Sequence record: ON529853.1
Length of the DNA stretch: 64,000 bases
Reading direction: 5' to 3' (one strand)
In this document: positions 36,464-45,842 of the stretch, piece after piece
How the letters are laid out: every line of letters starts with the position of its first letter
How positions within the stretch are numbered: the stretch's first letter is position 1
Made by a program: the position numbers and the translations under genes
The notes under the pieces: generated by a model
What the model saw: only the letters and a program-made list of their open reading frames with translations
What the model was told of the DNA's origin: nothing
Databases searched by the model: none

Positions 36464-36544
36464 TGGCGGGGGCGGAGGGAATCGAACCCCCTGGTTGACG
36501 CCTTCGGAGGGCGTTGCCTACATTCCGGTCGGCACTTCGCCCCC
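36464..36544 (-). tRNA. tRNA-Arg(CCG)
   Basis: GGGGGCG/CGCCCCC-G-CCA; anticodon loop CTCCGAA; enlarged D-loop. Confidence 0.85.
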
Positions 36545-36667: not shown

Positions 36668-36751
36668 TGGCTCCTATGAGAGGACTCGAACCTCTAAGTC
36701 TTGCGACGGTCGATTAACAGTCGACTGCGTTTACCATTCCGCCACATAGGA
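36668..36751 (-). tRNA. tRNA-Asn(GTT) with long variable arm
   Basis: TCCTATG/CATAGGA-G-CCA; loop CTGTTAA. Confidence 0.9.
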
Positions 36752-36984: not shown

Positions 36985-37061
36985 TGGTCCTAGCACCAGG
37001 ATTTGAACCTGGGACCGAGCGGTTATCGACCGCGCGCTCTACCAAACTGAGCTATGCTAGG
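36985..37061 (-). tRNA. tRNA-Ile(GAT)
   Basis: CCTAGCA/TGCTAGG-A-CCA; loop TCGATAA (C33). Confidence 0.85.
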
Positions 37062-39681: not shown

Positions 39682-39857
39682 CACATGTCTCCACAAGGAT
39701 CGTGCAGGGTGTCGCCCTGGTCGAGGTCCTCGACGAAACGGCCGTCCCGGAAACGACCGGTGGTGGTCTGGCCGTTGAGCCGGCGCACGACCCGCAACTG
39801 ATGGTCCAGCCAGTAGTAGGGCACGCCCCACGCCTCGCGGTAGACCGGCTCGGTCAC
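39681..39857 (-). CDS. Hypothetical protein (58 aa)
   Basis: GTG start overlaps the DUF4170 stop. Confidence 0.55.
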   Translation of the reverse strand: MTEPVYREAWGVPYYWLDHQLRVVRRLNGQTTTGRFRDGRFVEDLDQGDTLHDPCGDM

Positions 39858-40114
39858 GAGTAGGTCGCGCCTGAAGCGCGAACCACCAGATCGGCGACAG
39901 GTTTGCCGTGGGCGACGATCATCTCGTCGTAGGTGTTGATGTGGAAACGCATCAGGGCGTTGTCGACCGTCTGCCAGGCGTAGGCCTTCCACGCGTCGCG
40001 GGCGTCTTCGCGGCGCGTGAAAGACCCCACGAAGATGATCTTGCGCGGATCGCGGAAGGCTTCGTCGCGGGGATGGGGGTGCTCGCCCCCATAGACGTAA
40101 TAGGTGTCAGGCAT
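39854..40114 (-). CDS. DUF4170 family protein
   Basis: YVYGGE...F.D...IFVGSF...EDARDAWKAYAWQTVDNALMRF pattern. Confidence 0.75.
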   Translation of the reverse strand: MPDTYYVYGGEHPHPRDEAFRDPRKIIFVGSFTRREDARDAWKAYAWQTVDNALMRFHINTYDEMIVAHGKPVADLVVRASGATYS

Positions 40115-40116
40115 GC

Positions 40117-41004
40117 TTACAAAGTCACGATCAATCGGGGATTGAAGTTCGGGTTCAGTTCATGCCCGACATAGCCGCGCGGATTGCAGATCACGCGGGT
40201 CTCGCCGATCTGGTAGTCGCTGCTGTCATGCATATGACCATGGACCCACAGGGCGGGCTCCCATTCCAGCATCAGCGGCTCCAGCCGCGAGGCGTAGGCC
40301 GGGTTCAGCGGCGATCCCCGATAGCGATGGTGGCTCGACTGCTCCGACGGCGCATGGTGAGTAATCACCACGGTCGGGCCGTCATGCGGAACCCGTAGCG
40401 TTTCGGCCAGGAAGAACCGGCTCTCCAGGTGAAGGCGCCGCGTGTCTTCCGCCGTCAGGCGCTGCTGCTGCTTCAGTTCGATCTGCTGATAGTCGTTCAT
40501 ATCGGACTGGGCGTGCCGGATCGACAAGGGCCAGGTCCCGTAGAGATCGAAGTCGGTCCACAGGGTGGCGCCGAGGAACCGGACGTCGCCCATATGGACC
40601 TGCTCGTTATCCATGACGAAGACGCGGGCGGGCGCCAGTTCGTCCGCCTTGGCCTTCATCTTCTCGATGTGGCGGTGGTAGCGCCGCTTGCCGTAGAACT
40701 CGTGGTTGCCCGGCACATAGAGGCAAGGGACGTCAGGGAAATGACGCGCCAGCCAGATCACGCCGACGACGCCCGTCGCCAGGTCGCCGGCGGCGATGAC
40801 CAAATCGATCTCGTCCGCCGTCGGCGCCGTCCAGGTGCGCCGGTCCATGCCGCCGAACTCCAGATGGAGGTCCGACAGGATCAGGGCGCGCAAGGGCCGT
40901 CGTCCGGACCGGCGCTGCGCCAGGCCGGCTTCGATGTCGGCCTGCATGTCGGCCGCAGCCGCCACGGTGAACTCCATCTCAGCCTTGCTCCACTCGGTCT
41001 CCAT
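40117..41004 (-). CDS. Calcineurin-like metallophosphoesterase
   Basis: LSDLHLE, AAGDL, VPGNHEFY, VITHHAP, WVHGHMH motifs. Confidence 0.93.
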   Translation of the reverse strand: METEWSKAEMEFTVAAAADMQADIEAGLAQRRSGRRPLRALILSDLHLEFGGMDRRTWTAPTADEIDLVIAAGDLATGVVGVIWLARHFPDVPCLYVPGNHEFYGKRRYHRHIEKMKAKADELAPARVFVMDNEQVHMGDVRFLGATLWTDFDLYGTWPLSIRHAQSDMNDYQQIELKQQQRLTAEDTRRLHLESRFFLAETLRVPHDGPTVVITHHAPSEQSSHHRYRGSPLNPAYASRLEPLMLEWEPALWVHGHMHDSSDYQIGETRVICNPRGYVGHELNPNFNPRLIVTL

Positions 41005-41024
41005 CGTGGAGCATCCTTGAAATC

Positions 41025-41143
41025 TGGAGCGGGTGGACAGACTCGAACTGCCGCCTCCGGGTTAGCCACCCGGCGCTCCTGGGTCCACGCGAACCCCCGA
41101 CGATGATTCGCGTGATCATCGTCGGCCCTAGAGCCTCACCCGC
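41025..41143 (-). ncRNA. 119-nt tRNA-like RNA: Gly-type acceptor, GCT anticodon, two-hairpin D-loop insertion
   Basis: GCGGGTG/CACCCGC-T-CCA; D-stem GCTC/GAGC around 52 nt; CCGGG-TGGCTAA-CCCGG; GGCAG-TTCGAGT-CTGTC. Confidence 0.7.
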
Positions 41144-41255
41144 ATAAGTTGGCAGGAGTTTTCAGATATGGCGAGCCATACCCAGGGCGACCCTCCTGCC
41201 AGGAACCCCCGTCTCGGTTTCTTTCACCGGCCCCGACACGAGCACCTGTCAAAGC

Positions 41256-41336: not shown

Positions 41337-41383
41337 CGGCTTGCCGTGATTACTGGCAGACGGCGCCGTAGCTGTCAACAATG

Positions 41384-41414
41384 AAAAACGCCCCGACCTT
41401 TCGATCGGGGCGTT
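41384..41414 (-). terminator. Intrinsic terminator closing tRNA operon B
   Basis: AACGCCCCGA-N8-TCGGGGCGTT followed by TTT. Confidence 0.8.
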
Positions 41415-41416
41415 CT

Positions 41417-41728
41417 TCAGAGATTCGCCATCCACTGCTTGCGGCAGCGGGTGTGGTCCTTCCAGGACTTGCCGCCGGGACGCGACGCCATGAGGTCGTC
41501 GTAGGACGACGGCAGGACCATCCGGCGGCCACGGGCGCGGTAGAGGCGGTCGTGGGCTTCGCCGGTGTTGCGACGCCGCTCCTGCATGGTGCGGGGGCAG
41601 CGATGCATGTAGCGCCAGCGATGGCGGAAACGCCGGCAGCGGTAGGGCTCGCCGGGCTCCAGGTAGAGGACGCGCCAGCCCACGAAGTAGAAGCCGGTGT
41701 GGGTGACGCGTTCAAATTGGGGCTTCAT
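41417..41728 (-). CDS. Basic hypothetical protein (103 aa)
   Basis: SD AGGAGG; followed by the terminator. Confidence 0.75.
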   Translation of the reverse strand: MKPQFERVTHTGFYFVGWRVLYLEPGEPYRCRRFRHRWRYMHRCPRTMQERRRNTGEAHDRLYRARGRRMVLPSSYDDLMASRPGGKSWKDHTRCRKQWMANL

Positions 41729-41828: not shown

Positions 41829-41917
41829 TGGCGGATGGGGCAGGGATCGAACCCGCGTAACCCTCTCGGGTGTCGACCGCTTAGCAAGCGGCTGCCTTAC
41901 CTCTCGGCCACCCATCC
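41829..41917 (-). tRNA. tRNA-Ser(GCT)
   Basis: GGATGGG/CCCATCC-G-CCA; loop TTGCTAA; long variable arm. Confidence 0.95.
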
Positions 41918-41924
41918 GGGGTGA

Positions 41925-42009
41925 TGGCGGTGCGCCAGGGAATCGAACCCTCAACCTTGCGGTCGGCGACGGTTTTCAAGGCCGCTTGTCCCCATGGACG
42001 CTGCACACC
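41925..42009 (-). tRNA. tRNA-Ser(TGA) with a compact 4-bp/4-nt D-arm
   Basis: GGTGTGC/GCGCACC-G-CCA; D-arm GTCC-ATGG-GGAC; loop CTTGAAA. Confidence 0.8.
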
Positions 42010-43349: not shown

Positions 43350-43420
43350 TGGAGCCGGCGGACGGTGTCGAACCGTCCCATGTCCACTACGAAAGGTCAG
43401 CCCTGCCACCAGGCGCCGGC
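43350..43420 (-). tRNA. Compact, degenerate tRNA-Thr(CGT)
   Basis: GCCGGCG/CGCCGGC-T-CCA; loop TTCGTAG; weak anticodon stem. Confidence 0.6.
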
Positions 43421-43428
43421 GTTGTTGT

Positions 43429-43499
43429 TGGTGCCAAGGGAGGGAGTCAAACCCTCGCTGAACCCATACCAAGGGCTCGACCGATCACCCGGCCTTGGC
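43429..43499 (-). tRNA. Compact tRNA-Thr(GGT)
   Basis: GCCAAGG/CCTTGGC-A-CCA; loop TTGGTAT. Confidence 0.75.
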
Positions 43500-43507
43500 G
43501 TTGAAGA

Positions 43508-43582
43508 TGGTCGGAACACCGGGATTCGAACCTGGGACCCCTAGCTTCCCGAGCCAGTGCGCTACCGCTGCGCTACATTCCG
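43508..43582 (-). tRNA. tRNA-Pro(GGG)
   Basis: CGGAATG/TGTTCCG-A-CCA; loop TCGGGAA (C33, A37). Confidence 0.85.
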
Positions 43583-45677: not shown

Positions 45678-45752
45678 TGGAGCGACTGGTCGGAATCGAA
45701 CCGACGTCCCCAGGTTGGAAGCCTGGTGCTAAGGCCCCTCAGCTACAGTCGC
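45678..45752 (-). tRNA. tRNA-Gly(TCC)
   Basis: GCGACTG/CAGTCGC-T-CCA; loop CTTCCAA. Confidence 0.95.
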
Positions 45753-45766
45753 AGTATAAAACAAGG

Positions 45767-45842
45767 TGGAGCGACTCTCGGGACTCGAACCCGACCCTGC
45801 GCGTTGGCAACGCGTTGTACCCACCCATAATACGTGAGTCGC
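45767..45842 (-). tRNA. tRNA-Gly(GCC)
   Basis: GCGACTC/GAGTCGC-T-CCA; loop TTGCCAA. Confidence 0.92.

Follow-up and report, generated by a model that had tools for sequence, protein, structure and literature searches.

A stretch of 64,000 nucleotides (nt) from sequence record ON529853.1, referred to here as the window, carries on its minus strand a tRNA-like element (TLE) of 119 nt, read from 41143 to 41025 with an encoded CCA end. The element is real, under selection and restricted to a few phages, no earlier description of it was found, and it is probably a tRNA mimic. We tentatively favour the reading that the TLE is a functional, tRNA-derived and tRNA-Gly-like small RNA, which acts in trans as a tRNA mimic and does not decode. 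The window is identical to the Brevundimonas jumbo phages vB_BpoS-Marchewka and Bambus (348 kb, Dolichocephalovirinae), and the TLE was found in nine phages, namely seven Brevundimonas phages, CcrColossus and CcrPW (Colossus and PW below), being annotated in no record. The coordinates of the element, its parts and its neighbours are given in Table 1.

The complete cloverleaf with CCA, the D-loop of 52 nt with its double hairpin and the short variable loop had been described in an earlier note on this DNA, and this anatomy is upheld by the sequence and by RNAfold, in which the cloverleaf together with the two hairpins is the minimum-free-energy structure (-62.3 kcal/mol, z = -3.1). Like a canonical tRNA (RF00005), the TLE has an acceptor stem of 7 base pairs (bp; GCGGGUG/CACCCGC, with A8 and G9 as the next bases), a D-stem of 4 bp (GCUC/GAGC), and anticodon and T stems of 5 bp each, the former (CCGGG/CCCGG) preceded by G26 and the latter contained in GGCAG-UUCGAGU-CUGUC, after which follow U73 and CCA. 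The variable loop, AGGC, has 4 nt, and the TLE lies in or next to a tRNA gene cluster. G18 and G19 of the D-loop, the pair G53-C61 and the T loop are canonical, and the base at position -1 is U. The TLE differs from a canonical tRNA in the insertion of 45-52 nt in the D-loop, in A8, U14 and G21, which are found in all lineages instead of the usual U8, A14 and A21, and in the lack of U33 and of a conserved anticodon. In the window, the D-loop consists of UAGGG, hairpin 1, hairpin 2 and AG, so arranged that two helices follow G19, which would place them at the outer corner of the L if the molecule takes the standard tRNA fold.

Standard tools do not recognise this gene. ARAGORN reported 20 tRNAs in the window, the TLE not among them, and Rfam gave no family match at the locus, RF00005 included, either at the gathering score or at E <= 10. 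After in-silico removal of the insertion, ARAGORN calls a 74-nt tRNA-Ser(gct), a form which still lacks U33, U8 and A14. The TLE thus possesses the four standard helices, the T loop and the acceptor end by which a tRNA is defined, and as it stands it is recognised neither by the family model nor by the gene finder. U8, A14, A21 and U33 are near-universal in tRNAs. With respect to decoding, the TLE has neither U33 and an anticodon kept among its orthologues nor the tertiary nucleotides U8, A14 and A21. A protein-coding explanation was rejected, as the locus holds only short overlapping open reading frames (ORFs) and the substitutions are pairwise compensatory; an attachment (att) site or integration remnant was likewise set aside, considering that the cloverleaf is complete and that the phages were isolated as plaque-formers. 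A full-text literature search gave no account of a phage tRNA or tRNA-like RNA with a structured D-loop expansion, and the papers describing these phages list only tRNAs from ARAGORN, tRNAscan or Rfam (PMC3556154; PMC10070969).

Evidence for a selected RNA comes from the comparison of its variants. The 119 nt are unchanged in five phages (Marchewka, Bambus, Papperlapapp, Kabachok and Domovoi), the flanks of which diverge by about 5%, and Kikimora and Gurke carry a TLE of the same length in which both inserted hairpins are of wholly different sequence. The element measures 126 nt in CcrColossus and 125 nt in CcrPW. Between the lineages the divergence is deep, with flanks about 73% identical and a neighbouring protein about 60-68% identical, and the insertion nevertheless consists of two hairpins in every lineage; hairpin 1 of Kikimora, Colossus and PW differs in sequence and still folds. 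A fifth sequence variant, from the public runs X8 (DNA, a 6.4-kb contig) and X10, differs from Marchewka at seven positions of the TLE, every one in hairpin 1, six of which form three double compensatory changes (41100/41122, 41101/41121 and 41104/41118), and the seventh (41119) turns an A-U pair into G.U. The 431 nt around the TLE on the X8 contig contain 46 substitutions and 13 gaps. In the four distinct database sequences, the four core helices are 100% paired in every case, with both-sided changes at the acceptor pairs 1:72 and 5:68 and the T-stem pairs 51:63 and 52:62; when the whole structure is counted, the share of paired cells is 91.6%, as opposed to 80% in shuffles, and the observed covariation score was reached by none of 500 shuffles. 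A covariance model (R1) built from these four sequences scores 133.7 bits in the window and 105-130 bits in the other three lineages. All helices of the TLE are kept in the five variants through compensatory changes, and the random decay of the insertion stems in orthologues, which the earlier note had named as a finding that would speak against its proposal, was not seen. The base pairing of the inserted helices is under selection, all helices and the anticodon-like arm are under purifying selection, and the TLE is far beyond chance.

Its range is narrow and so far comprises only these giant phages, which infect Caulobacter and Brevundimonas. In IMG/VR, exact-pattern scans gave Colossus, PW and two chance matches in coding sequence, and nothing else; a metagenome scan for the TLE pattern gave one chance match inside a repeat-rich ORF. 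Scans of 185,579 species genomes of GTDB yielded 0 matches and then 18 chance matches without T arms, and blastn (E <= 10) against 50,697 phage records detected no TLE outside the nine phages. Applied to the syntenic tRNA region of CcrSC, the covariance model detected no TLE.

The apices of hairpin 1 and hairpin 2 are mutually complementary in every lineage, with a different sequence each time. The loops are ACGC and GCGU in Marchewka, GGCC and GGCC in Kikimora, and GCGC and GCGC in both Colossus and PW, and the longest inter-apex complementarity is 8 nt in Marchewka, Kikimora and PW and 6 nt in Colossus. In random hairpin pairs, a complementarity of at least 8 nt occurs with a probability of 0.001-0.006 and one of at least 6 nt with a probability of 0.017-0.029. 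Because the apices of Marchewka are complementary without being identical, the duplication of a single palindrome cannot explain the pattern, which selection for pairing can. Judging from these sequences, the inter-apex complementarity is under selection, and the pairing could hold the two loops of one molecule together as a kiss, belong to an alternative conformer or join two molecules in a dimer.

In the anticodon-like arm, only positions 33 and 35 vary, and across the four lineages Marchewka, Kikimora, Colossus and PW they read G/C/C/A and C/C/U/U, respectively; U33 never occurs, and U36-A37-A38 is invariant. Nominally, the Brevundimonas phages have the anticodon GCU, whereas Colossus and PW have GUU, so that the Ser anticodon ascribed to the element earlier is a feature of one part of the family only. 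The G at position 33, also pointed out at that time, is present in the Marchewka loop and is not a fixed property of the element. It had further been argued that the TLE is no backup copy, and this stands, as ARAGORN identifies a normal tRNA-Ser(gct) at 41829-41917 and normal tRNA-Gly(tcc) and tRNA-Gly(gcc) genes at 45678-45842 of the window; a normal tRNA-Asn(gtt) is found there as well.

Unusual bases at position 33 also occur in real tRNAs of these phages. C33 is found in the otherwise canonical tRNA-Ile(gat) (36985-37061) and tRNA-Pro(ggg) (43508-43582) of the window, the loop of tRNA-Ile(GAU) being UCGAUAA in Marchewka, CcrColossus and CcrSC and that of tRNA-Pro(GGG) being UCGGGAA in Marchewka and Kikimora and UCGGGAU in Colossus. 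Further cases of C33 are the tRNA-Pro(CGG) of Colossus and the tRNA-Ser(GGA) of Kikimora. C33 is kept across three genera in tRNA-Ile(GAU) and tRNA-Pro(GGG), and it is a habit of the lineage and not a mark of the TLE. The missing U33 alone is consequently no proof that the TLE does not decode. The C33 of the phage tRNAs may represent an escape from a nuclease that requires U33; according to published work, phage tRNAs bear changes in the anticodon loop that evade host tRNA nucleases (PMC10264068; PMC11555353).

With regard to its ancestry, the ordinary tRNAs that score best under the TLE covariance model are tRNA-Gly genes, namely the tRNA-Gly(gcc) of CcrSC (52.9 bits), the tRNA-Gly(tcc) of the window (52.5 bits) and the tRNA-Gly of Colossus (46.5 bits), followed by tRNA-Trp and tRNA-Ile at about 45 bits. 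In a plain alignment, tRNA-Gly(tcc) also ranks first, with an identity of only about 68%. In Escherichia coli, the identity set of the glycyl-tRNA synthetase (GlyRS) comprises G1-C72, C2-G71, G3-C70, U73, C35 and C36. Part of the bacterial tRNA-Gly signature that the earlier note had seen in the acceptor stem holds: C2-G71, G3-C70 and U73, together with the variable loop of 4 nt, are common to the TLE and the phage tRNA-Gly. The pair 1:72 is G-C in the Brevundimonas phages and A-U in CcrColossus and CcrPW, and positions 35/36 are CU or UU, without the determinants C35 and C36, which means that the full GlyRS identity set is not found in the TLE. On the basis of these similarities, the TLE is likely to have descended from a copy of a tRNA-Gly.

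The TLE is preceded by a leader that is conserved together with it. The motif GACGGGG is invariant, the closing stem co-varies (GGCAGGAG/CUCCUGCC in Marchewka, GGUGG/CCACC in Colossus and PW), the inner hairpin has a different sequence in each lineage, UCU(G)AAAAC is conserved, and CUUAU stands immediately 5' of the first base of the TLE. In the X8 variant, the conserved block stops at 41216. A recurrent promoter or motif was rejected as an explanation of the leader, since its motifs occur only once in the window. The leader motif GAGACGGG (41216-41204; GACGGG in Colossus and PW) is complementary to 41035-41026 (CCCGCUC or CCCGUU), i.e., to the 3' acceptor strand and the discriminator region, and this long-range helix appears in four of five full-length RNAfold folds, the motif of CcrPW pairing elsewhere. 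In the precursor, such a helix would be a competitor of the acceptor stem; neither of its partners varies. Further upstream, the sequences TTGACA, TTGAAG and TTCGAG are aligned in three lineages, and the TTGACA box is likely to be a sign of the transcript start; a sigma-70 scan found no full promoter. The distal promoter-like block was matched once in the window, against 0 expected matches, and a bidirectional terminator-like hairpin (41384..41417) lies upstream of it.

Table 1. Positions of the tRNA-like element (TLE), its parts and the associated features in the window.
Feature	Position	Strand	Basis
TLE, full cloverleaf with encoded CCA	41025..41143	-	sequence, RNAfold, covariance model, pair counts
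D-loop hairpin 1: 11 bp plus a C-G pair closing the tetraloop ACGC, one bulged A	41097..41125	-	folds
D-loop hairpin 2: 6 bp plus tetraloop GCGU, apex complementary to that of hairpin 1	41081..41096	-	folds
Anticodon-like arm: 5-bp stem, loop U-N-G-Y-U-A-A (UGGCUAA in Marchewka)	41057..41073	-	lineage comparison
T arm with canonical loop UUCGAGU, 3' acceptor strand, U73, CCA	41025..41052	-	sequence, pair counts
Structured 5' leader, co-conserved, 73 nt	41144..41216	-	alignments, folds
TTGACA box, possible -35 element	41247..41252	-	about 30 nt upstream of the conserved block
Distal promoter-like block TTGACA-N5-GGCGCC-N3-TGCCAGTAATC, also present in Colossus and PW	41348..41378	-	pattern scan
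Metallophosphoesterase gene, first in the downstream operon	40117..41004	-	PF00149, PF13773, phrog_1649
DUF4170 gene, next after the metallophosphoesterase gene	39854..40114	-	operon order

In all nine phages, the TLE heads an operon of a metallophosphoesterase and a DUF4170 protein, with a peptide deformylase some genes further on; the operon lies between two tRNA arrays. The gap from CCA to the start codon is 20 nt in Marchewka, 17 nt in Kikimora and 124 nt in Colossus. The metallophosphoesterase of the Marchewka group has an N-terminal extension of 37 residues (40894-41004, minus strand), which is absent from Kikimora, Colossus and all other homologues, the alignments beginning at residue 38; the extension is either lineage-specific or due to a mis-called start codon, which affects the distance from the TLE to the true start. 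Among the phages examined, the TLE and the metallophosphoesterase have the same distribution, both being present in the nine phages and neither in those of the CcrSC or phiCbK type. The record of CcrSC contains, at the position syntenic to the TLE and the phosphoesterase, 1.5 kb without an annotated gene (83157-84663), and the covariance model gave no TLE in this stretch. Homologues of the metallophosphoesterase occur in Cr30, Rhizobium phage P10VF and Xanthomonas phage XbC2, where the covariance model found no adjacent TLE and there is no intergenic space; an RNA ligase is found one gene away from the homologue in Cr30, which is no more than a hint. By sequence, the metallophosphoesterase has no relative in the PDB, and a match to cAMP-phosphodiesterase was far below the threshold. 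The RNA signal at the locus consists of one low-depth contig of 184 nt (40988-41160), from a run only guessed to be RNA.

A mimic that does not decode is preferred because the anticodon differs among lineages in which the body is otherwise constant, because position 33 drifts freely, because the acceptor and the anticodon point to different amino acids, and because normal tRNAs for the same codons are present. In the proposed mechanism, the TLE would be transcribed from its own promoter together with the 73-nt leader and the metallophosphoesterase operon and would be released by the tRNA-processing enzymes of the host, with RNase P cutting at CUUAU|G and 3' trimming to CCA. Processing of the tRNA type is suggested by the U at -1, the T loop, the GG of the D-loop and the encoded CCA, all of which match the 20 normal phage tRNAs, CCA being encoded in 20 of 20 as in the TLE. 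The mature TLE would then work in trans as a tRNA mimic, offering its L-shaped body and an anticodon stem-loop resembling that of tRNA-Ser(GCU) or tRNA-Asn(GUU) to a tRNA-binding factor, and the rigid two-helix module at the elbow may bar normal translation or add a second surface for binding or dimerisation. The most plausible partner would be a tRNA-targeting enzyme of the host, for which the TLE could serve as a non-cleavable bait or inhibitor, and a bait directed at a nuclease is the most attractive of the partner hypotheses because the changes at position 33 in the real tRNAs fit nuclease escape. A decoy for tRNA nucleases or uncharged-tRNA sensors and a donor of Gly outside the ribosome, suggested in the earlier note, are candidate roles. 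The more specific proposal, in which the TLE is an uncleavable bait for a tRNA-targeting immune nuclease of the host (or another tRNA-binding factor), the two hairpins form a self-docking or dimerising module and the co-produced phosphoesterase may handle the products of RNA cleavage, is rather unlikely in its entirety; if true, the TLE would represent a new class of mimic and an RNA-based counter-defence distinct from the supply of replacement tRNAs.

Several points weigh against a mimic acting in trans. The fixed place at the head of an operon and the co-conserved leader fit a role in cis at least as naturally, the case against decoding by this loop is weaker because bona fide tRNAs also carry C33, and the 184-nt contig overlaps both putative processing sites, so that no maturation is shown. 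In addition, the family consists of five sequence variants from one phage subfamily only, and for this reason the statistics rest on few independent events.

The main rival, somewhat unlikely in our estimation, is that the TLE together with its leader is a cis element of the 5' untranslated region of the operon, i.e., a signal for processing, stability or translation. Cutting by RNase P could "punctuate" the transcript, so that a short and defined 5' end would lie next to the Shine-Dalgarno sequence, or the element could act as a conformational switch over the genes of the metallophosphoesterase, the DUF4170 protein and those downstream. The TLE always lies directly upstream of the metallophosphoesterase gene and shares its distribution, the structured leader is conserved with it and its invariant GACGGGG can pair with the 3' acceptor strand in place of the acceptor stem, and the hairpin apices can pair with each other, which suggests alternative conformers. 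However, from what is established about RNase P, a signal for this enzyme should require neither an invariant anticodon arm nor a CCA end, and the homologues of the metallophosphoesterase in Cr30, P10VF and XbC2 manage without a TLE and without intergenic space. Moreover, the synteny of the region is conserved in general, so that the linkage is weak evidence.

It is less probable still that the TLE is a working, charged tRNA with an odd body, which GlyRS or another synthetase would aminoacylate, either to read AGY or AAY codons on the ribosome or to donate the aminoacyl group outside it. The intact cloverleaf, T loop and CCA would permit this, as would the invariant U36-A37-A38, the acceptor features shared with the phage tRNA-Gly, the top score of tRNA-Gly among ordinary tRNAs and the non-U33 loops in real tRNAs of these phages. 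A fusion of a tRNA with the Spinach aptamer is also reported to have kept its activity in protein synthesis (PMC5397188). However, the switch between GCU and GUU on one body means that no codon or amino acid is kept, G1-C72 is not conserved, a long variable arm for the seryl-tRNA synthetase is absent, and position 33 varies freely as opposed to the fixed C33 of the real tRNAs. By the established identity rules of E. coli, the GlyRS determinants C35 and C36 are also missing, A8, U14 and G21 are unusual, and mistranslation would be costly.

An interrupted or intron-containing tRNA precursor, considered in the earlier note, or a decaying tRNA pseudogene broken by palindromic DNA is very improbable: the insertion does consist of near-perfect palindromes that could have come as inserted DNA, and the standard tRNA finders do reject the gene, but the inserted helices are kept by compensatory changes over deep divergence and zero substitutions occur in the TLE among phages with about 5% flank divergence. 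At 45-52 nt, the insertion is also far below the size of a self-splicing group I intron, it sits in the D-loop as two simple hairpins with no intron family matched in Rfam, the tools gave no sign of its excision, and the "spliced" product would still be odd.

Comparison with known RNAs places the TLE close to several of them and within none. Like transfer-messenger RNA (tmRNA), it has a tRNA-like module of acceptor and T arm with CCA within a larger structured RNA, but its pair 3:70 is G-C and not G3.U70, the anticodon arm is kept, and the insertion lies in the D-loop and does not replace the anticodon arm; as there is also no ARAGORN or Rfam match to tmRNA at the locus, this identity was rejected. 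The stable RNAs C and D of phage T4 (species 2 and 1) are small RNAs of no known function that are encoded and matured together with the phage tRNAs, a likeness by description only; no Rfam family matched the TLE. Y RNAs of the YrlA type contain a tRNA-like domain and are bound by Ro60/Rsr (PMC4201824), and Y RNAs have been reported in phages, CcrColossus included (PMC12135203). YrlA resembles the TLE in mimicking the T, D and acceptor region of a tRNA without decoding, as the TLE presumably does, and in being a substrate of tRNA-modifying and tRNA-processing enzymes, processing being a prediction in the case of the TLE. In YrlA, however, the place of the anticodon arm is taken by the Ro60-binding stem, which is made up of the two ends, and a loop closes the "acceptor", whereas the TLE has a closed anticodon arm and an open acceptor with CCA. 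An identity as a Y RNA bound by Ro60 was accordingly rejected, with no Rfam match to a Y RNA, a different topology and no TROVE gene nearby: none adjoins the TLE in Colossus and none is annotated in the window, the neighbouring proteins being the metallophosphoesterase, DUF4170, a methyltransferase and unknowns. Finally, the phage tRNAs that escape nucleases (PMC10264068; PMC11555353) are also tRNA-shaped phage RNAs with an anticodon loop that departs from the host norm, but they decode with a fixed anticodon, whereas the TLE changes its anticodon between lineages and has an extra domain.

The cluster holds further RNA genes of this kind. About 1 kb from the TLE lies a tmRNA-like RNA of 218 nt, in which the 5' GGGGGCG pairs with the 3' CGCCUCC to give G3.U70, with a T arm GGGGG-UUCGAAU-CCCCU, the discriminator A and CCA. 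It scores 31.9 bits with the Rfam tmRNA model against a gathering score of 47 (E = 1.8e-11 on 261 nt), received no ARAGORN call, and the source paper of the phages found no tmRNA. The RNA is 95-100% identical across seven of seven Brevundimonas jumbo phages, the identity between Marchewka and Kikimora being 96% compared with about 73% in nearby intergenic DNA, and blastn gave no match in Colossus or PW; a possible tag frame has a GCA start and the end ...AHAF-stop. A link between this gene and the leader of the TLE was dismissed, as the two have only a 10-nt string in common, which was obtained in 23 of 500 shuffles and is not significant. With the covariance model, more CCA-ended tRNA-like genes were found that ARAGORN and Rfam had missed, at 36464-36544, 41925-42009, 43350-43420 and 43429-43499 (minus strand). 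One of them is Arg(CCG)-like and has an oversized D arm; another, Ser(UGA)-like, lies where the annotation of Domovoi has a tRNA-Ser; and two, each of 71 nt, have reduced D arms, one of these with a Thr(GGU)-like loop. The tRNA-Asn(gtt) at 36668-36751 (minus strand, 84 nt) has an apparent long variable arm, which is unusual for tRNA-Asn.

TLE genes are thus invisible to ARAGORN, Rfam and the published annotations, and because the tRNA-like and tmRNA-like genes of the same cluster are unannotated as well, the tRNA-related RNA of jumbo phages is under-counted. The TLE shows, in a natural RNA, the amount of structure that can be accommodated at the D-loop corner of the tRNA fold. Phage tRNA clusters are now read as weapons over the host tRNA pool, and a conserved tRNA-shaped RNA without a fixed anticodon and with a selected extra domain would show that phages evolve tRNA mimics and not just spare tRNAs.

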